Shown: positions 5,434-59,791 of the stretch, piece by piece
Position numbering within the stretch: position 1 is the first letter of the stretch
Layout of the letters: every line of letters starts with the position of its first letter
Assembly (NCBI GenBank): GCA_002189035.1
Contig: NEEC01000008.1
Location: 992,001-1,056,000, forward strand
Source of the DNA: Utricularia gibba
Lineage: Eukaryota > Plantae > Magnoliophyta
Direction of reading: 5' to 3'
Length of the DNA stretch: 64,000 nt
Position numbers and translations under genes: made by a program
The notes under the pieces: model-generated
Seen by the model: the letters and a program-made list of their open reading frames with translations, nothing else
The model's database searches: none
What the model was told of the DNA's origin: nothing

Positions 5434-7407
5434 ATGTTGCTCGGAGGGGGGAAAATTTCCGCATGCAATGCTGCCGCAAACGCCGCCGTCAATGGGAATT
5501 CCCGTTTCTCCGGGCTGATTAGTCGCTGCCCGTCGAATTACTACGCCTGGGATCGGAGGACCCAGTTCTTTCCGATTCAGTCGGTACTCACTGGCGAGCA
5601 GATGACCAAGACCCAGAAGCTTACTTCGCAGCCGACCCTTGCTGACCGGCTTCGGCTCGGGAGTTTGGCTGAGGATGGACTGTCTTATACGGAGAAGTTC
5701 ATAGTGAGGTGCTATGAGGTTGGGATCAACAAGACTGCCACTGTTGAGACAATCGCTAATCTTTTGCAGGTGCGTGGTTAGAGAGCTGGATCTGAATTTA
5801 TTTGTGTATTGGTGGTTTCTGTATATGGTTTTCGTGGATTGCATAGCTTGTGTCTTCCTGTTTCTTCTTCTGCATGGTGGTGTTGTTTTCCAAACGGATG
5901 CTACTTATTTTGTGAATTGGGTACAAGGTCTTTCTTCTTTCTCTGTTCCTACTGCTCCTGATACGAGATGCTCCATATATCTGGATTTTTCCATTGTTAT
6001 ACGTGGGATTTTCACTCATCGTTGAGGCTAAAGTGGCCGTGGAATTGAAGTGTCTAATACATGGGACATCTGCGTTTCTGATTGGTGTGGACAGGAAGTT
6101 GGTTGCAACCATGCCCAAAGTGTTGGTTTCTCAACTGATGGATTCGCCACCACGCTCACTATGAGGAAGTTGAATCTCATATGGGTGACTGCTCGTCTTC
6201 ACATCGAAATCTATAGATACCCTGCCTGGTGATGTAGTTTGAAATGGCATCAATTGTTGCACACTTGAGTTGCTGAGTTTAACTGGGGATTTGAAAACAG
6301 GAGTGATGTGGTTGAGATTGAGACTTGGTGCCAAACTGAGGGAAAGATCGGCACTCGGCGAGACTGGATTATCAAGGACTATGCCACTGATGAAGTCATT
6401 GGGAGAGCAACAAGGTAAACCCGACACCATACCTGTATGTTGATCATCTGTCTTTCCCTAACTGACGAGGGGTGAAAATGGATACATGGATTCATATTTG
6501 ACTGCGTGGGTTTCCAGTGCTACCTTCAGTTCAACTGAAAATCATATTTGACTGTTTGGTGTCTTGCGGTTTTTCAACTGTAAATGCAGCTTCCCTTTTG
6601 TGTAATCTGCAACATTTTTTTTTTTTTTTTTGGCAGTAAGTGGGTGATGATGAACCAAAACACCAGGCGGCTCCACAAAGTTTCTGATGAAGTACGCAAT
6701 GAACTTCTGCTTTACTGCCCAAAAGAACTAAGGTGAATGACTTTCTCAAGTACCATGATGAACACAGTGTATCCATCATGATTCTCTATGGTTTCCAGAC
6801 TATCGTTTCCGGAAGAGAACAACAATAGCATCAAGAAAATTGCTAAACTGGCGGACCCTTCTGGGTTTTACAAGCCTGGACTCGTGGTACATGTACATAG
6901 TTTATCATTACACATTCATGTTTTTCTGATTCTGATGTTATAGCAATCGACTGCCTCAGCCTAGACGAGCCGATCTCGACATGAACCACCATGTAAACAA
7001 TGTCACCTACATTGGATGGGTTCTGGAGGTTGGTTCTCTTCTTGGTTAGACTCTGCTGCACACTCCCACTTTCTTCATTTATCTTCCATTGCCTTCACCT
7101 TGTTGATTGACAAACAACTGATCTGATGCAACAACAGAGCATGCCACAGGAGATGATAGACAGCCATGAACTGCAAACCATAACTTTGGACTACCGCCGT
7201 GAATGCCAGCACGATGATATCGTCGACTCCCTTACAACCCCGGAGTCGATCATCGACCACGCACCCGGCGAGCTCATCGGAACAAATGGTGCTCCCCGGG
7301 ACGACGAAAAGGGGTGCCTCAAGTTTCTGCATTTGCTGAGATTATCAGGTGATGGTTCTGAAATAAACAGGGGGCGCACAGAGTGGCGAAGGAAGCATCT
7401 GAAGTAA
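5434..7407 (+). CDS. FATA: Plastid acyl-ACP thioesterase A (7 exons)
   Basis: LADRLRLGSLAEDGLSYTEKFIVRCYEVGINKTATVETIANLLQ|EVGCNHAQSVGFSTDGFATT, catalytic-region DMNHHVNNVTYIGWVLE and LDYRRECQHDD; GT-AG junctions keep the frame. Confidence 0.97.
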
Positions 7408-7491
7408 AGTAGTTACGAGGTTAACTCTTTTTAACCGAGTGTTCGGCTTCAGCTCAATTTTAAAGCTTGCTTATTTACTGCTGTAATTTCA

Positions 7492-8168
7492 TGATATACA
7501 TCTTTTTGCATTTTTTGTTTGCAAAATACATCTTCTTGTATTAAGTTAGTAAAATACATCAGTTTACTAAATCGACTGCAATTGCTGTTGGCTCTGTCGC
7601 ATTTGGAATGAAGTCCGCCAAGTTCATCCTCATTCACCCGCCGGTCCATAAATCTGGCCCCACCATTGCCGCCTAGCACCACGCGGTGCTGAAGGTTATC
7701 ATCTTCTTCTTCGGCCTGGCTTTTTGTTTAAGCCAGACCTGCGGCGACGTCCGTCGTACGAGATGATTCGTCGCTTCCTGGATCTGTTGCCCATGCCCTT
7801 TTATACTATGCGTCGTAGAATTTTACCGCTGTCAGTAACCGTATGTCCGCTTCGGAAGTGAGGTACACCGCCGAAGTTCTCCGGCGACGCCCGCCGCCGT
7901 GCAATCTACTGGTTTTTGGGCTGACCCACGAAATGTTCCTCTTAAGTTCTCTCAACTTAGGGGCCATAGAGGCACCCGTCAATCGAAGTCTACGATGTGC
8001 ATTACTTGACGAAATTGAGCCAACTCCGAGATTTGATTCAGCATTACAAGGCGGAGATCAGCGGCGAGTGTCGACCGGTGCAGAATATTAATCTAAAATG
8101 ATGTATTTTCCTAACTCAATACAAAAGGATGTATTTTGCAAATCAAAAATACATAAAGATGTATTTCA
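7492..8168. mobile_element. Pack-MULE-like element: 75-bp inverted repeats around a captured gene fragment
   Basis: 7492-7566 aligns to the reverse complement of 8094-8168 with 10 mismatches in 75 nt by hand count; each arm has three (A/T)ATACATC sub-repeats. Candidate direct repeats: GTAATTTCAT (7483-7492 / 8179-8188) and TACTGCTGTAATTT (7476-7489 / 8217-8230). Confidence 0.75.
7608..8086 (+). pseudogene. Decayed N-terminal half of an IRX15/IRX15L-like DUF579 gene, inside the inverted repeats
   Basis: MKSAKFILIHPPVHK...; AHALLYYAS*NFT..RMSASEVRYTAEVLRRRPPPCNLLVFGLTHE; HPSIEVYDVHYLTK...ECRPVQN. Stops at 7674-7676 and 7816-7818, frameshifts, an internal deletion of the GRTVF region, and truncation at the right repeat. 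Confidence 0.88.
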
Positions 8169-8471
8169 CTAATTGTTCGTAATTTCATCGTGGTGGCCTT
8201 TCCGTACAATTCTATCTACTGCTGTAATTTTTGTTGTGTGGATTTCTTGTGCTACGAGATTAACGATTTGGTAATTATCTCGCCGACGGGTAAATGGTAA
8301 AAAAAAAAAAAAAAACTGTATGGGGGATATAAAAGCTGATGGTTTTTTATTTGAATGGTCTATTTAGGGCTATTTCTGTTTCTTTCTGGGAAGCCCAAAC
8401 TGAAGGCTGTGTGTGTCTGTGTGTAAGCACCGGTCGCCGTTGAAGGAAGATTTGATTTTAGGGACGCGAGG

Positions 8472-8786
8472 ATGACCGGAAAAGCTAAGCCAAAGAAGCA
8501 TACGGCGAAGGAAATCGCGGCGAAGGTGGATGCCGCCACCACCAATCGCGGGGGAGGTAAGGCTGGGCTCGCGGATCGTTCCGGTCAGGATAAGGGGGGA
8601 CACGCGAAGCTTGAGTGTCCGCTTTGCAAGGTAACGGCTCCTGATTTGAAATCTATGCAGATCCATCACGAGGCTCGTCATCCGAAGATCCCATTTGACG
8701 AGACTAAGCTGAATAATCTTCACGCCACTGCTGTACCCGAAACATCCAAGCCTAAACCTGGGATCCGTGGAAGCTTCAAGAAGTGA
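8472..8786 (+). CDS. MBS1: METHYLENE BLUE SENSITIVITY-like small C2H2 zinc-finger protein (104 aa)
   Basis: MTGKAKPKKHTAKEIAAKVDAATTNRGGGKAGLADR...ECPLCKVTAPDLKSMQIHHEARHP...KPKPGIRGSFKK. MBS1 versus MBS2 not resolved. Confidence 0.93.
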   Translation: MTGKAKPKKHTAKEIAAKVDAATTNRGGGKAGLADRSGQDKGGHAKLECPLCKVTAPDLKSMQIHHEARHPKIPFDETKLNNLHATAVPETSKPKPGIRGSFKK

Positions 8787-9684
8787 AATCAAAATTTCTG
8801 CTTGCTTGGGTCGTGTCCCTGGCATATTGATGAAAACCTTGAAAATCAAGTGTTGGTATCCTGTAAAATAGATCCTTTTGGTCATATTTCTGACTTTCCC
8901 TATATCTCTGAATCTGTAGCGTCTGGCCCTTGATTTGTGGCTTCCTGTGCTTTGTTAAGCCTGACCGACATGCTGCAATGCTTAATATATTCTGCCTCCC
9001 ATGCGGTGTTTCAATATCCTGAGGTCTCCCCAACTGCATCAGCACATGTCCTTAGAAAACTTTGTTTTATGACTTGGGAGCATGGGAATTTTTTCTGCGA
9101 ATCCATGCTGATGGATTCTTGACTTTATCTGCAGCTGAAGGAGTTCCTATGTGTTCGGAGGGAGAATCAAGAATTCCTTTTGTGTTATGTTGTGTGCTCC
9201 ATCTATCTCAGTTATTACGTAGGCACCCCTATCTTTGAGATCACTTTTGGTATTTATGTGCCCTACGTTGTTTCTAAAAACCGTGTCTGGTTGCTGCATG
9301 AAGCTGATTTAGATAGAACATGCAGCAGCTGCTGCTACATTTGTTGCCTAAATAAACCAGGGCTCTCTTTTTTGGAACATTGAACCTTCGCTTCATCTCT
9401 GTTCAAAGTTTACAGTCACAGTCTCCATTCCTTTGTTAGGTATTAGATTACTTGTTCATGTGATTTAAGTTCCCTCCCAAGGGGCACAGGCACATAATAA
9501 AGGGGAAGGGAGCAGTCCCAAAATGCAATCCTCTTGAATCTAGTAGAGTATTTATTTTTGATAGTGATCATCAGCAAATCCATAGAGTTGATAGCATCAT
9601 TTTTCAACCAAGTATCAAAAAGCAGCAACATCAATATATATCCATGGAACGAGAACAGCATTCAGACAGCATCAATGTATTCGT

Positions 9685-13310: not shown

Positions 13311-16300
13311 TCAGTTGCCTCCCTTCTGCTTCAAAGTGATCTTGTCACCCAAGCTGAGGGCGATGCCCTGAGTCTTGCTCCTTATTCTGATGTATCCACT
13401 CAGTTTGGAGTCCGCCTGCTTCTCCACGCTCACATTCACCAACGCATCCTCCCCGAACACACTCTTGGCGTACAAGTTCGCCGCCAAGAACCCGCATTCG
13501 CCTTCCAGGGCGGACCTAAAAGAACACACAAGAAACACAGTGAACACCTACCTGATAATAATAATAGTGGACAACTCATCTGGATGGATGGACTTACGGA
13601 GCAGTCAGGCATCTCATGTTTGTGGACTTGATTATATGATCAAGGAACTCCTTTTCGTCCGTGATGGTCGTATTGATGGCAACCTGGAATCGTACACAAC
13701 TTCAAGGCCAGTTCATAGATATAATACAGTCACAGAGAGAAGAGACTACCTTGTTTTCCCATTCAAACTCCGCCCACATGGTTCGGAAGGCGGCATCAGT
13801 GCACACAGCGGGAGATATGTAGTCCATGATATCAATATGGATGTCATTCAGCACAATGACATTCCGCTCCAGCACGTTCGAGGTTTCATAAACAATGTTG
13901 CCAAAGATAACTCCAGTTTCAGTGGATGACACCTTGATGTTTGCCTTTATTTGCTTGCTTGACTCTGGGGCGATGGTATAATTCTGAGGCCGTTCTACAA
14001 GTTTGAGGTCACCCATAGTTGCCAACTCCAGACACAAATTCTGGAGGGTTTCCTTTGTTCGATTAATGATCGTGACATCAAGGAGAATATCATAGTGATG
14101 GACGGTCACATAAGCTTCCGCATACACAGGGTCACTGAACCCTGTGAGTTGAATGATACGATTCAGCTTATTCGCCTCATCCGCATCCTTGGTAAATTCC
14201 CCAGTGGCACGTTTAAGATCATCTTGGACCTGATCTTCAAGCTCCAATTGGCTCATTCCCTGATGACACACGAACAAAGCCCACTGATTAACAGTGTAAG
14301 ACAAGAATTTTATTTTCAGGCTTGACAAAAAAACAAGGAAAGCTACTTTTAACCTTTCTGCTTTTTAAGTGACAGAAGTCTATGAGGTCATCTGGCTGTG
14401 AGTGAGGAACTTGCGTCTTTGCATTGATTTCTTCTGTTTCACGGGCCTTTTTGTCATAAAGCATCTTAACAAAACTCTCACGACAAGAAGCCAACCAGAT
14501 TGACCTTATTGCATCGCCCGTGTTGCATAGCAACCTTACGCAGATAACAATCCGGTCACGAGAATCATTATCTATTGGGTGAGAGAGAACTGATGATTGG
14601 CCCAGCTGCAGCATTGCAACCAAAATTAGTACTACATCAGTGGATGCCTTGTTCACCTCAGTTTTCAGCGGTTGAACCTCCTCCAACCTTAGAATGAGTT
14701 TCGTTAAGGTGCATGCAATAACTGCTCCAAGAAAGAAATCTCCAGCAAGGAGAAGGGACCTCAAGTTCCCTACAGTCAGTGATCCCTGAAGTACAGTTGG
14801 AGAGGAAAACGCATTTTCAGAGGCAGCACTTTGAGTTGCGTAAGTTCCATCAGCAAGAATAGCTGGTCTCCGAGATGAAACAGAAACTGTGCTTGCCTCC
14901 TGACTCTTCTTAGATGGATCAGTAGATTCTTCTTCTTCAGAAACAGAAAAGAAGGGCATATCTCCAAGACATTGTTTTATGGTTGTGATGCCACTCTCAA
15001 TTTCAGATAGTGATAGACAGTACTCTCCAATGATCCACAGAGCACAAGTGCAAACTCTAGCTGCCCGAATCTGATAAAATGTATCCAAAAGCCTAGTGAT
15101 AATAGAGACCCTCAACTTTGGGTTGGTCTCTATTATCTCTCTGACAAAAACGATGACGTCAATTGCAGACGCTACATTGTTGTCTCCCAAGAAGTCCATC
15201 AACAAGTGGACAACTGTGCTAGCTACTTCTGGATACTTGACAGCACATGAATGAATAGCTTGAATGAGCATTTGGCGGTACTCGCCATTTTTTTCGAGCT
15301 CCCCACTTTGAGTTTTCACAACTTCCTTCCTAAGAGTTGAAACCACCTCAGAGACATTGCGTGGTGTGATGAGTTCCAGAACAATATCAAGTGTTTTCTT
15401 GCGAATATCAAGGTTTGGACTTGACAGCGCCCTCAAAACATCCATTATCATATCCACCATTGTCTCCCTGTGAGAAGCTTTTAGCTCATTCAAGCGATCA
15501 AGCACAATGAGTTTGACGTTGTTGTCACTTTGTGAGATAAGAAGCTGGCAATATGTAGTCGCAGCAGCTTTAACGGCCGTGGGAGCAGAAGACAAGGAAA
15601 CAAGTGTTCCGGCACATTCATAAATCACAGCAGCAGAGGGAGCATTTAGTAAGGATATAATGATTTTGATGTATCTCCCTTTCTCATCCTTCTTCATTCT
15701 ACATACTTTTCGTATCAGGTCCAATACAACCATCTGAAATAACTCCCCCCAATCTAAGACACGGTCAATGTTGCTCAAAAGGTAATTAACAGCACGGTCC
15801 TGAGCACAGTTGAAAAGCATGAGAAAAGCATTTCTTCTAGCTGACGGATCCTGCTCCACAGAGAGGAACTTCTCAATGGTTTCTGGAGCATCTGCCAGTA
15901 GTTGCTCACCTTGAGGCAGCTTGTAAATTGACATCACGGCAAGAATGGCATTTCTCCTAACATAAGGAACTCGATGTTCCAAGTTTGCAATAATAGAAGG
16001 AATCAAGGGTTCAATGATCTCCACTTCATTCAGCCGGCAAAGGAACCTTAGAGTGACACCACGAATATATTCATTTGGGTGCTGCAGATTATTCCTCAGA
16101 TTTTGGCAGATTAAAATCATTTCTGGAAGCACGCGACCTTTCCCATCAGTTTTATCAATTATCTCCAAATAGAGTAGCAACAGTTTCTGAACCGTATGGT
16201 CCTCGGACGGTAAAACATATCTGACAATGGTGATGAATAGTTGTGGGAGCGTCTCATCATTCAACATCAGCATAATTGCATTTTTCATGGCTTCAATCTT

Positions 16301-16405
16301 AGCGGGAACATCATTGCCTTGAAGAGCTTCCTTGATCTCATTAGCCAGTGCTGGGGTACCCTTGTCAAAGTGCACCAACAGCGAGCAATACTTCTCCATT
16401 TTCAC
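13311..16405 (-). CDS. COPB: Coatomer subunit beta (4 coding exons; probable 5' UTR intron about 16445-16900)
   Basis: [95 protein letters not shown]. Confidence 0.97.
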
Positions 16406-19300: not shown

Positions 19301-20065
19301 ATTCCCTCTGGTTCTTTGTTTTTGTTCCTTTCTCCCGTTTCCATAGCCACAGCTCTTGGGGAATTTCCTCCGCCTTCGTCTCCACCACATTTTCTGTAAA
19401 ACAATTTTTTTAAAAAACCACCCCAACCCCATCTGTTTTTTCTTCATCTGGAGCGCCACCGCTATCATTTTTACATGATTGATTGAGGGCAGAGAACACG
19501 GCATACGTTCTTGAAAGGAAGACGGAATTGGGTTCTTTGTATTAATCAGGTGCAGAAACTGAGGTGGCTGGGGGCGTAATCGATTCTCTCAAGGTTAGAG
19601 CTTTTGAAGGTTTAGGGGTGGGGGCCTGTGTGAGTTTAATGGCATGTTCTTCATTGGAATGGGATGCAGAAGTTGGGTTTGCAGTTTTAGGGTTTTTGAT
19701 AAGTCAAGATTCAATTTTTATGTTGGTGGGTTTTGGACATTTGGATCGGAAAGGTGATGGAACTGGGGAACTTCGTTTTCCTTAAGGCTGTCAACTGATT
19801 TGATCGAGTATTGTCTACTGTCTGAAAGGCTACCACTTCTTTTCAGGATCATTCTCTCAGGTCCCAGAAGCTTTATTTAATTCTTCCTAACAGAAACCAG
19901 CAGCACTGCCGCGCCCTTTGGTTAGTAGAACAAAGTGGACGTTCTTCTTCTTCTGCTTATTTGACTTCAGATCCACTCTCTTTCAGGGAGAAAATAACCT
20001 ACAGCGAAAAGTGCGTTTTCTTACCGCTGCTGCCAATTATGTCTGTGTCTGCAGTTTTCCTCGAC

Positions 20066-20638
20066 ATGGCTAATGCTACGACATCGCCGTGTGCTGCGTG
20101 CAAGTTTCTCCGGCGAAAGTGTCTCCCGGAGTGCGTATTCGCGCCCTACTTTCCACCGGACCAACCCCAGAAATTCGCCAACGTTCACAAAGTGTTCGGC
20201 GCCAGCAACGTCACGAAGCTTCTGAACGACCTGCAGCCTCACCAACGGGAGGACGCGGTGAATTCCCTCGCCTATGAGGCCGATATGCGGCTTAGGGACC
20301 CCGTTTACGGCTGCGTCGGAGTCATCTCCCTCCTCCAGCACCAACTCCGGCAACTTCAAATCGATCTGAGCTGCGCGAAATCGGAGCTATCAAAGTACAA
20401 GAGCTTGACAATCTCCGGCCACGGCCTACTCGCGGCGGCAGCGGCACAAGGAATCAACCACCACTTCCAACACCAACTTTTCCCGGTTAATCAGCAGCAA
20501 GTACTCAGAGGCTTCGATCACGGAACAAACGCGTTCGAAACCGGAGGACTTCTGTCGATGAACGTCTCCGCCAATATCGGGCAGCTAGCATCCCTGGCAG
20601 CGGACGGACGCCGGACTCCCGTCGATCCATCGTCCTAG
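20066..20638 (+). CDS. AS2: LOB-domain transcription factor ASYMMETRIC LEAVES 2 (LBD6); coding region intronless, 5' UTR spliced
   Basis: SPCAACKFLRRKC.PECVFAPYFPPDQPQKFANVHKVFGASNVTKLL, YEADMRLRDPVYGCVGVISLLQHQLRQLQIDLSCAKSELSKY and C-terminal PVDPS are AS2-type; TCTGCAG acceptor at 20054 lies just before the ATG. Confidence 0.93.
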   Translation: MANATTSPCAACKFLRRKCLPECVFAPYFPPDQPQKFANVHKVFGASNVTKLLNDLQPHQREDAVNSLAYEADMRLRDPVYGCVGVISLLQHQLRQLQIDLSCAKSELSKYKSLTISGHGLLAAAAAQGINHHFQHQLFPVNQQQVLRGFDHGTNAFETGGLLSMNVSANIGQLASLAADGRRTPVDPSS

Positions 20639-33730: not shown

Positions 33731-35534
33731 TCACTTCACAGTCACGATCTTGATGATGGACGCGGTGCCAATTCTGTGTATGGCCACCACTGCATCACCT
33801 GCCTTGCAAAGTCCCTTTGTCTTGGCATGCTGAAGAGCAAACTCTAGAGCTTCTTCTGTCGACTCCTCGTGGGAGGCTCTGGCTGAGCCGGCGCAGAGAA
33901 CCGGGATCAGCCCTCTGAATATGAGACTGTGCCTGGCTGGGGACTCATCGCTGCAAGACCAGTCAAATGAATCCGACTTGATTTCGGGAACAACCACGGA
34001 GAGAATGGGGAGTCCAGGCCTGTATTTAGCCACCAGTTTAGCAGTGCTTCCACCCCTTGTGAGGACTAGGATAAGAGCAGCCTTGGCAGAGTTGGCTGTT
34101 CGGACAGCAGAGGAAGCCAGACTTTCAAGTGGGCTCATTGGCACAGGTGCGTTTATCATTATCCGCTTGAAAACATCACCGTAGTCGATGGTACTTTCAG
34201 CCTCCATACAGATCTTTGCCATCGTGCGGACTGCGAGCTCAGGATAAGCTCCTGCCGCTGTTTCCCCACTGAGCATAACACAGTCTGTTCCATCGAGAAC
34301 GGCATTCGCAACATCTGTAGCTTCTGCTCGAGTTGGCCTGGGAGACTTGATCATGGACTCCAACATCTGTGTTGCAGTGACCACAGGCTTTCCTTGGATG
34401 TTACACTTGTATATCATCACCTTCTGAGCTAAGAATATCTTCTCAATAGGGATTTCCATTCCCAGATCACCTCGAGCAACCATGAAGGCGTCAGAGTTAG
34501 CTAAAATATCATCAAAATTTGCCACACCTTCTTGATTTTCAACCTGTCAATCGAATAGCCAAGCAACAAAAGGGATATGACTTAGCAGTGCTAATATGCA
34601 AAGCAGCCAAGACACCATACACACATCAGTCCCATGCCGGTCTCCATATTGAGGATCTCGATATGACTAAGGGACAGTTGAAACTAACCTTTGACATAAG
34701 AAGAATGTTCTTAGCATGTGTGCCCAGCACCTTCCGAACTTGCACCAAGTCCGAACCTTTCCTAACAAAGGATAGAGCAATCATGTCGATTTTATTAGGA
34801 ACTCCCCACTTCAAGATATCTTCCTTGTCTTTTTCAGTCAATGTAGGGAGATCAACCACAACCCCGGGAAGATTGACATTCTTTCTCTCCCCAAGAACTG
34901 CTGTGTTCTCACACCTGCATCTTACCAGACCTTTTTCCTTGTCACATTCCAAGACCTTGAAAGAGATTGTGCCATCAGCACAAAGAATAACACTCCCAGG
35001 TTTCACATCCTCAGGCAACTTCTTGTAACTCATGCAGATCATGTTAGTATCGCCCTTGATGGAGTAATCGGTGGATATCATGATCTCATTCCCTTGTTTC
35101 AACTGAATCGGTTTCGCATCCTTCAAGAAACCAGTTCTAATCTCCGGACCCTGAGACAAAAACAATAGACACGGCGATGATCTAAAATAAGAACCCACTG
35201 TCACCATCAACAACCAAAAAAAATACCCAAAAAAAGCAAATCTAGAAAAGGAAAAACGACACAGATCGGAGGAAATCGAAAAGGGGAAAGGAGATATTGC
35301 CTTCGTATCAAGCATGACGGCGCAAAGTATTCCGGTATTCTCCATCGCGCGGCGGAGATTATCAAGGGTTTCCTGGTGGTACTCGTGCGAACCATGGGAG
35401 AAATTGAATCTTGCCACGTTCATACCAGCGCGAAGAAGCTTCTCCGCCATGGGGACAGAGCGCGACGCTGGACCCAGCGTGCACACGATCTTCGTCTTAG
35501 GGCGGAGCTGGATGAAGGCATCGTGATTCTCCAT
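33731..35534 (-). CDS. Cytosolic pyruvate kinase (3 exons; first intron GC-AG)
   Basis: RPKTKIVCTLGPASRSVPM, VARFNFSHG, MLDTK|GPEIRTG, MVARGDLGMEIPIEKIFLAQK, SPRPTRAEATDVANAVLDG. Confidence 0.97.
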
Positions 35535-37167
35535 ATCGCTCCAAAGATGCGAAACTGCCGATCCTTCTCCTACGATGGTGAGTGAATAAACGTAAGCCTC
35601 CCGTCCACGCCCCACGCACGTATCTATATATATGCGATATTCTTGAAAAGTATCTTCCGGTCCCCCGGCGTCCGGCTTCAAAAAACAAGCTATGGGCCGT
35701 GCCGTTGTTTAACCACTAGGGCGCCACCGTTTTCCCCTCCTCCGTACCATTTTCTAGAACCCATTTAACAAGGCCCAAATAAACCATTACCCGGCCCATG
35801 GACCTCCTGCAGTCCTCTTATTGGGCCCACTTTTCAGCCCATATAATGAGTCTGGATCAAAAGGCCTATTAACAAAAATTCAATTCTAATTACTCAATTT
35901 ATTATACAATGCTTATTTCAAAAAATAATTCTAATAAAGAAGGAGTTGGAATTTTTAAATTTCTAAAAAATAAAAAATACTTATATATAGTAACATAAGC
36001 AGAAATTTTCTAAATATAACGTAATCCAAAGACCTTGTTCTATTTTATTAGTTTGTTGAAATAATTTTATTTATTTTTTAAAAATTTAATCTTTAGCTGT
36101 AAAATCAGAAAATTCATATTCTACGATAACTTCAGAAATTATTAAATTTCTTGAATTTCTGTTTCAAAAATTAAATGAATGATTAATTAGAAAAAAAAAA
36201 TACTTATTCACTTTTTATATATTACAAAAATATATTTATGTTATAACATTAAATTATATAATAATTTAGTATATTTTATTTTATTAAATTTTATAATATA
36301 ATTTATTTTATCCCATAAAATAGTTTTATAATCTCAAATTGAATTACATAATTTGAAATACAGTTTTAAATTACAGAACATATCACAATTCTTCACCTAT
36401 AATTTAAAATTGACCCCTTAATTATCGAATCAAACTAGTTAATCGGTATTTCAAATTTACCAAATTCAATTCATTGAATCAAATAATCATATACAATTCA
36501 ATATTTTTCTACTGCAAGACACAATTTAAATAAATATGACACAAAATTAAAATATAATACATATATTGATCTGTCAAACTCAATCTTGACAAATTCAAAC
36601 AGGGTTCATTAGTGTCCCAATTTTAAAATTGGTTCATGAAACAATGATATGGATAAAAGAGATTATTTAAGTGTAATCGCCCTTTCCAGTCCAATTTTGA
36701 CTGTAGAATCAGCACATGCCGTACAAGGCATATTCACATGTCTTTCTCGTGCCATTTATATTTATATTTATTATTATTAAAAAAATTATTAAACATCAGA
36801 TAAATGATTCAATTCAATTGTAATATTCAATTAAAAAATATGTTTAATCCGTTTTTAAAATATGGCGTCTGTTTTTTTGTTATTATTATATTAAAGAAAA
36901 CAACATTATTATTATTAATTTTTTTATTTAAATATAACGAGCACGTTTTTTTGTTTTGAGTCAAGGGAGGGGTCTTGGGTGACGTGGACGTTGACCAGGA
37001 AAAATCATTATGGACTAGTAGTTGACGTGCTCCTCTTTGTTTATCCAATCCGAGCTTATCCTTTTGTTTCTGGGAGATATAAATATGGGAGCTTGGGGAG
37101 GAGGAGGATATCGGCAATCACCTTCCTTCTAACGCACGCCAAAGAATCCTCATTCCACGAGCACACG

Positions 37168-58642: not shown

Positions 58643-58987
58643 ACGATCCATCGCTGCTGCTTTCCTTCGGCCAGGTTTGTTTGTTTCTTCGTTCTGTTTC
58701 ACTCTTCGATTTAACCTTTTAAGCCGTTTATATTTGTTATAGTTTAATATACTCTGAAAAAATGATTTAAACTTTGTTAGTATTATTTGAATTTAATTTA
58801 TTACATTATTTTATTACCACCAAGCGCACCACTGCTTTAATAAAGCGGAACTGTCACATGGGCACTAGAATGATTTGATTAATGACGGAGAGGCGAATTC
58901 GAAGACTTCTTCCGATCAAATCTCCGTTGGAGTGAGAATACGGGGCGCCTGCCGCCGTTCCTTGCGGTGGCTGTGCTACGAACGATA

Positions 58988-59791
58988 ATGACCTCCAGGC
59001 ACGTTGCTGAGGATCATCGTCATTACCCACCGCCGCCGCCGTCGTCGTCCTCCGCATCTTTCCGAGGATGCTGCTGCTGCCTATTTCTCCTGTTTTCGTT
59101 CCTTGCACTCCTCGTCCTCGCCGCGGTCCTGGTCGTGATTCTCGTTGTGAAACCTCGTAAACCTGAATTTGAGCTCCAGCAGGTAAGCGTCCAATATATG
59201 GGGATAAACCCTACCGCAGCATCCTCCGCCACCGTATCCCTGGTAATCCACATGGTCTTCGTCGCGACCAACGACAACAAGGTCGGGATCCAATACGGCG
59301 AGTCTCGATTCACGGCGATGTACCGCGGCATTCCCCTCGGCCGCGGCTCCATCGCCGGATTCTACCAGCCGGCGCACAGCGTCCGCCGCATCGAGACGAC
59401 GATTTCCGTCGATCGCGTGAATCTACTGCAGGCGGAGGCAGCGGACATGGTGAGAGACGCCTCTTTGAATGACCGGGTTGAGTTCCGGGTCCTCGGCGAT
59501 GTCGGAGCCAAGATCCGGATCCTCGGCGTGACATCCCCAGGCGTAGAGGTTAGTCGAAAAATTAATTAATTAAACCTCTCCACACCTGTTCCCTAAATTG
59601 TCGGCAACTGCTTCCCATACGTCCGCTGCTGCTTTCTTCCTTCTAGAAGGCGGGGCTCCGGTCGATCGGTTTTGTGACAATCCGGTAGTATAAAATGGAT
59701 GCAGGTCTCCGTGGATTGCTCGATCGCGATCAGTCCTACGAAGCAGGCTCTGGTAAACAAGCAATGCGGCTTCGACGGCCTCACCTTATGA
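58988..59791 (+). CDS. LEA_2 / NDR1-HIN1-like single-pass membrane protein (2 exons)
   Basis: SFRGCCCCLFLLFSFLALLVLA transmembrane segment, NDNKVGIQYG, YRGIPLG, DASLNDRVE; exon 2 VSVDCSIAISP...GFDGLTL* (59705-59791). Confidence 0.9.

Follow-up and report, generated by a model that had tools for sequence, protein, structure and literature searches.

A probable Mutator-like, Pack-type transposon carrying an IRX15-like gene fragment between a thioesterase gene and an MBS1-like gene of Utricularia gibba

Gene setting and structure of the element

The element lies in a 64-kb stretch of Utricularia gibba DNA (64,000 nt, hereafter the window), in the spacer between two genes of the plus strand. On its left is the last exon (7136-7407, stop codon 7405-7407) of a FATA-like acyl-ACP thioesterase gene (PF20791), and on its right an MBS1-like zinc-finger gene (8472-8786, hereafter MBS). 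Two inverted-repeat arms (7492-7566 on the plus strand, 8094-8168 on the minus strand) enclose a piece of IRX15-like coding sequence, hereafter the cargo, which is on the plus strand as are both genes. The left arm begins 85 nt after the thioesterase stop. RNA contigs of MBS (X7 record 27) start near 8378, which leaves about 200 bp between the element and this transcript.

The surroundings are gene-dense, with a large coatomer-beta/adaptin exon (14288-16405, minus strand), a LOB-domain gene (19961-20638, plus strand), pyruvate kinase exons (33731-35681, minus strand) and a LEA_2 gene (58967-59569, plus strand). A Pfam scan of 13 long ORFs of the window found no transposase. Antisense to MBS runs a 171-aa ORF (8370-8885, minus strand), almost certainly spurious, that could mislead an ORF track. 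The best database matches of the MBS protein reach only 89 % identity, Vitis, monocots and Lamiales being about equally close. The last thioesterase exon and the element also lie between the two halves of a 20-nt inverted pair (95 %); it consists of a T17 run within the thioesterase gene (6612-6631) and an A17 run upstream of MBS (8300-8319), i.e. probably just two homopolymers.

The arms, found by repeat search and direct comparison, are 75 nt long and 87 % complementary (65 of 75 positions), and the similarity between them ends sharply at the outer and inner edges of both. Each is built of three sub-repeats of about 28-30 nt with one ATACATC motif apiece, starting at 7496, 7526 and 7554 in the left arm and found as the complement at 8100, 8128 and 8158 in the right arm; the repeats, their ten mismatches and the motifs reported by the first-pass annotation were thus recovered in full. 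A 20-nt core of the arm has matches in the window only inside the element, with none expected by shuffling. Both arms are poor in GC (0.23), whilst the 527 nt that they enclose reach 0.52; in the host spacer to the left and right, GC is 0.36-0.40. When 7480-8185 was folded as RNA, the two arms paired as one long stem (z = -6.1). Two scans of metagenome contigs with the arm pattern returned no match and then three, which were rejected as chance because each covers a single sub-repeat of 25-32 nt only.

IRX15 and IRX15-L (DUF579, Pfam PF21729) are xylan-synthesis genes. The PF21729 profile (IRX15_IRX15L_GXM) matches the cargo twice, at 7843-8088 (E-value 1.9e-8, above the curated cut-off, profile positions 2-36) and at 7976-8088 (E-value 1.9e-5, profile positions 57-90 of 189). 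A tblastn analysis with 120 IRX15-type proteins of rosids, collected with a Brassica IRX15 protein as query, resolved the cargo into three IRX15 pieces in three reading frames. The first piece (7608-7724, plus strand) holds the start codon and the N-terminal/transmembrane part (MKSAKFILIHPP..., about residues 1-39), interrupted by a TAG stop at 7674. The second (7765-7956, plus strand, in another frame) reads ...ALLYYAS*...PPCNLLVFGLTHE...SLN and corresponds to about residues 67-128 of the 309-aa IRX15-like protein P0105, with a TAG stop at 7816. The third (7970-8086, plus strand, in the third frame) reads RHPSIEVYDV...ECRPVQN and corresponds to about residues 149-187.

Between the second and third pieces, at 7957-7969 (plus strand), about 20 codons are absent; a donor-like DNA contig apparently has some 51 additional letters there, as reckoned from coordinates (joint 7963>7968). 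The decay that had been proposed for this DUF579 fragment, i.e. two stops, frameshifts and an internal deletion, is therefore borne out. The same holds for its limits, the ATG standing 42 nt inward of the left arm and the ECRPVQN end being recovered by tblastn 7 nt short of the right arm. Two short stretches join the cargo to the arms: a 41-nt leader (7567-7607, plus strand) of lower contig depth, which may be parental 5' UTR, and a 7-nt filler (8087-8093, plus strand). In one sister contig, about 80 nt next to the left arm are missing (joint 7560>7683).

In its alignment to IRX15/IRX15-L genes, the cargo spans the N-terminal anchor and the domain's first half, including PPCNLLVFGLTHE and ECRPVQN. 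Unlike these genes, it covers the profile only in part (positions 2-36 and 57-90 of 189) and has two stops, three frames and a deletion, and hence is no gene. Read at the sequence level, the cargo is the front (5'/N-terminal) half of an IRX15-like gene, dead and encoding nothing. No family besides PF21729 and the IRX15 pieces, and no transposase, was found within 7608-8086.

The 120 rosid proteins are about 45-55 % identical to the cargo, and the donor protein is not among them. When the 82-aa ORF of the cargo was used in an exhaustive search of representative proteins, a single true IRX15 match was obtained (a Brassica protein, 48 % identity); a search for short relatives of this ORF gave no candidates, and an exact-protein lookup of the ORF and of the MBS protein found no record.

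Sister copies and parental genes

Contigs from public runs of the same organism, of DNA (X2 and X3) and of RNA (X17 and X7), were aligned to positions 6900-9100 at a likeness of at least 80 %, which yielded 93 aligned contigs of all identity classes. In X2, the depth is about 42 in the single-copy flanks, 461 in the left arm, 85-611 in the bins of the cargo and 529 in the right arm; these values are summed assembler word depths and indicate a rough level, not a true copy count. At roughly ten times the single-copy depth, they point to a family of about ten copies. Because the depths of arms and cargo are similar, most elements with these arms carry the IRX15 cargo.

One contig joins 7526 to 8132, i.e. 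left arm to right arm, and some contigs share only the outer part of the arm before becoming different (loose end at 7534). Such contigs may stem from arms-only (MITE-like) relatives or from relatives with other cargo.

Contigs part from the element at 7492/7496 (left) or 8169/8174 (right), and the flanks into which they pass differ from one another (agreement 0.62-0.78). For instance, an 845-nt sister contig (X3 record 19) follows 7492-7908 with 13 differences and then runs into foreign flank. The element has thus been mobile, other copies with different flanks being seen. The junctions of the present copy were found in a second individual, since two X2 contigs (records 9 and 14) cross both of its ends with 2-4 differences.

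Two sister contigs, X3 record 20 (about three times the single-copy depth) and X7 record 26 (which extends into the right arm), span 7963-7968 without extra letters. The internal deletion is therefore common to the copies and predates their amplification, which implies that an ancestor made the capture and that the unit was amplified afterwards. We infer a single capture followed by amplification; on this comparison the present copy did not itself capture the fragment and would descend from the family member that did. By contrast, most contigs have one extra G after 7959, so that the frame change at this place is confined to the present copy or a few others at most in the minority. The present copy and one of its sisters share about 97 % identity, whereas the two arms of the present copy are only 87 % alike; most of the arm mismatch was hence already in the master element and gives no date for the insertion.

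The parental genes are seen past 8086. Three X2 contigs (agreement 0.99), one slightly different X3 contig and an 835-nt X17 RNA contig continue there in frame with LLFSDCKLAI, which is the normal continuation of an IRX15 protein after ECRPVQN (compare P0003). Before 7968, the letters of the X17 contig encode ...SAYLVSRLEE, resembling the IRX15 protein segment of that place. At least two intact IRX15-like genes thus exist elsewhere in the genome, and at least one is apparently expressed. DNA and RNA contigs agree at the capture breakpoint (8086/8087), so this breakpoint is not an exon edge.

Of 119 nt compared with the cargo, 13 differ in the X17 RNA contig; in a DNA contig of single-copy depth (X2 record 12), 17 of 190 do, which puts the parental contigs at about 89-91 % identity. 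The divergence from the donor, which the first-pass annotation proposed to estimate, is thus seen in these contigs as an identity of about 90 %. The central claim of that annotation, a transduplicated IRX15-like piece bounded by terminal inverted repeats (TIRs), is likewise upheld, arms and cargo being multi-copy with unrelated flanks and intact parental genes lying elsewhere.

The RNA contigs over the cargo have 5-17 differences each, and their source is consequently not the present copy but its sisters or the parental genes; their depths are low and DNA carry-over is possible. The left arm, in turn, is part of a neighbour's transcript. One X7 RNA contig (record 24), spliced from 7026 to 7136 at GT..AG, shows no difference up to 7536, where it ends inside the arm, and at least one form of thioesterase mRNA therefore includes part of it. 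Read-through from the thioesterase gene, suggested beforehand, is accordingly seen into the left arm up to 7536 but not further. The thioesterase contigs of X17 stop at 7381/7406, which, beside the X7 contig, seemingly reflects alternative 3' ends.

All four runs contain a second thioesterase-MBS pair with exons about 87 % identical to those studied here (38 differences in 284 nt over 7123-7406, and 54-55 in about 385 nt over 8466-8855). This paralogous block is duplicated, as would fit an old duplication of the whole genome or of a segment. In one X2 contig of the block, the counterparts of 7406 and 8466 are joined and its genes are apparently about 490 nt apart, reckoned from coordinates; an IRX15 gene would not fit between them. 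The spacer of the block shows less than 80 % similarity to the present one and so cannot be used as an empty site.

These data bear on whether an IRX15-like gene simply decayed in place, with inverted repeats that are unrelated or due to chance. The damaged reading frame agrees with such decay, and nothing more does. Against it stand the multiple copies of arms plus cargo in foreign flanks, the parting of the parental genes from the cargo exactly at 8086/8087, beside the arm, the paralogous spacer of apparently only about 490 nt, and a match between the arms that is far beyond chance. We thus regard an in-situ pseudogene, to which single-copy arms and an IRX15 gene in place would have pointed, as ruled out, with a residual probability that is practically negligible.

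Flank repeats and element ends

On either side of the element stands a perfect 10-nt repeat, GTAATTTCAT. Its left copy (7483-7492) abuts the arm and shares its last base with the first base of the arm, and its right copy (8179-8188, GTAATTTTAT in the X2 individual) lies 10 nt beyond the right arm, behind a spacer CTAATTGTTC (8169-8178). Repeats of at least 10 nt occur in 0.13 % of random flank pairs of the window, and the decamer is a candidate target-site duplication (TSD) of 8-10 nt.

A second, 18-nt direct repeat, TAT[T/C]TACTGCTGTAATTT, links 7472-7489 to 8213-8230 at 17 of 18 positions (chance 0.06 %), its left copy overlapping the left decamer. Weak similarity continues past both 18-nt copies. 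Taking this repeat as the primary TSD would give an element of 7490-8212, in which 44 nt outside the right arm are not repeat sequence. We set this reading aside since an older local duplication (about 45 nt) of the host spacer, predating the insertion, would be the simpler account; the element would then have inserted into the first unit of this duplication with a TSD of 8-10 nt. Of the earlier proposal that the 10-bp and 14-bp flanks represent a TSD, it stands that the repeats are real and unlikely by chance, while the assignment is weakened by the displacement of the right decamer by 10 nt and by the second repeat nearby.

Four sister contigs remain aligned to 8174, so that part of 8169-8178 is probably element sequence. 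The arms of some sister copies extend about 10-11 nt outward (left ...GCTGAGTTGG, right CAACTCAGC...), with no clear left counterpart in the present copy, and the termini given here are therefore provisional.

The untidiness of these flank repeats, i.e. the displaced decamer together with the 18-mer, could be read as the product of templated repair, and one sister right flank restarts with an arm-like GCAAAATACAT motif. Both observations would fit a spread by other means than transposition, be it within a larger repeat, by segmental duplication or as filler DNA of double-strand-break repair, the arms not being working ends. We consider this highly improbable, because sister contigs cease to match at both arm ends or a few nt from them, the flanks beyond disagree, and the size, the inverted arms and the sub-repeats are those of a mobile element.

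The termini also bear on the superfamily. The end bases of the decamer may belong to the element, which would hide an 8-nt TSD (TAATTTCA) of the length found with hAT elements, and termini of the form GGCTGAGTTGG, seen in sisters, bear a loose resemblance to Tourist-type ends. A cargo-carrying TIR transposon of the hAT or PIF/Harbinger superfamily is nonetheless rather unlikely. With 75-86 nt, the arms are longer than is usual for hAT, and the ends (TGATA..., or GGCTGAG... in sisters) are unlike the hAT terminal motif, which they do not show. Moreover, no 3-nt TAA/TTA duplication occurs at either candidate end.

Class of the element and its meaning

The reading that we hold with good confidence is that of a Pack-type DNA transposon, non-autonomous and moving by cut-and-paste, which carries an IRX15 fragment and is most likely Mutator-like. 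The Mutator-like assignment is favoured by the arm length, the GC-poor flank repeat of 8-11 nt, the GC-rich cargo and a transcript start that follows about 200 nt further on; membership of the Mutator superfamily is likely though unproven.

The history of the element would be as follows. The AT-rich 75-nt arms, whose units of about 28-30 nt are the presumed transposase-binding sites, would flank the GC-rich cargo, which an ancestral element would have acquired in one capture from an IRX15-like (DUF579) gene, taking its 5' half, with an internal deletion of about 51 nt. The unit of arms plus cargo would then have been mobilised in trans to give roughly ten copies. One of these, the present copy, would have inserted into the AT-rich spacer, 85 nt past the FATA stop and with the MBS transcript starting about 200 nt further on, and further private damage would have accumulated after insertion.

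The closest known class is that of the Pack-MULEs of rice, maize, Arabidopsis and lotus. Like these, the element has inverted arms around a non-transposon gene fragment and no transposase, GC-rich cargo in an AT-rich setting, a short GC-poor flank repeat, a position near a gene 5' end, a parental gene retained elsewhere and several copies with the same cargo. An AT-rich flanking repeat, GC-rich cargo and a position just upstream of a gene are traits of Pack-MULEs (PMC5861414). It differs from them in that its arms consist of three short sub-repeats and measure 75-86 nt, and in that its TSD is not clean. Many MULE TIRs are longer than this. The label Pack-MULE-like is thus borne out for the TIRs, the host-gene cargo, the parental gene and the mobility, whereas the kinship with Mutator is plausible only and the TSD ambiguous.

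Pack-TIR elements of other superfamilies (Pack-hAT, Pack-CACTA), surveyed in PMC8277862, are likewise TIR transposons with captured host sequence, but the arm length and the flank repeat of 9-10 nt point here more to Mutator. With MITEs and foldback non-autonomous elements, the present one shares its size (<800 bp), AT-rich inverted arms with sub-repeats, multiple copies, proximity to genes and hairpin RNA. In contrast to these, three quarters of it are host coding sequence and its copies number about ten, not hundreds.

Capture of gene fragments by Mutator-like and other TIR elements has long been established, with thousands of cases in rice. The phenomenon is thus ordinary, a Pack-type TIR transposon copy being an established class. 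The lotus genome holds 1,447 Pack-MULEs together with lineage-specific duplication (PMC4053705), hAT elements being its most abundant DNA transposons (PMC4053705, PMC9804982). Our literature search found no paper linking Pack-MULEs with IRX15, and the IRX15-carrying transposon family is probably undescribed as such.

A further question is whether the unit was kept and spread for a function, either as a portable GC-rich 5' module upstream of genes or as a source of small RNAs tuning the parental IRX15-like genes, which we judge very unlikely. If the small-RNA version were true, hairpin transcripts made by read-through (e.g. from the thioesterase gene) would tune the parental genes and thereby xylan synthesis. 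As the cargo has no inverted partner here, read-through RNA gives double-stranded arms and not double-stranded IRX15 sequence. Neither siRNA production nor any service of the present copy to the plant is shown by the data here.

For annotation, the 82-aa ORF and the DUF579 match should be masked as transposon cargo, as should those of the roughly ten sister copies, with no gene call. The visible effect at this locus is on the neighbouring gene, one isoform of the thioesterase mRNA ending inside or beyond the left arm, so that a transposon arm serves as part of its 3' UTR. More broadly, the family is a clean example of a captured gene fragment amplified after its capture, since the copies share the deletion.
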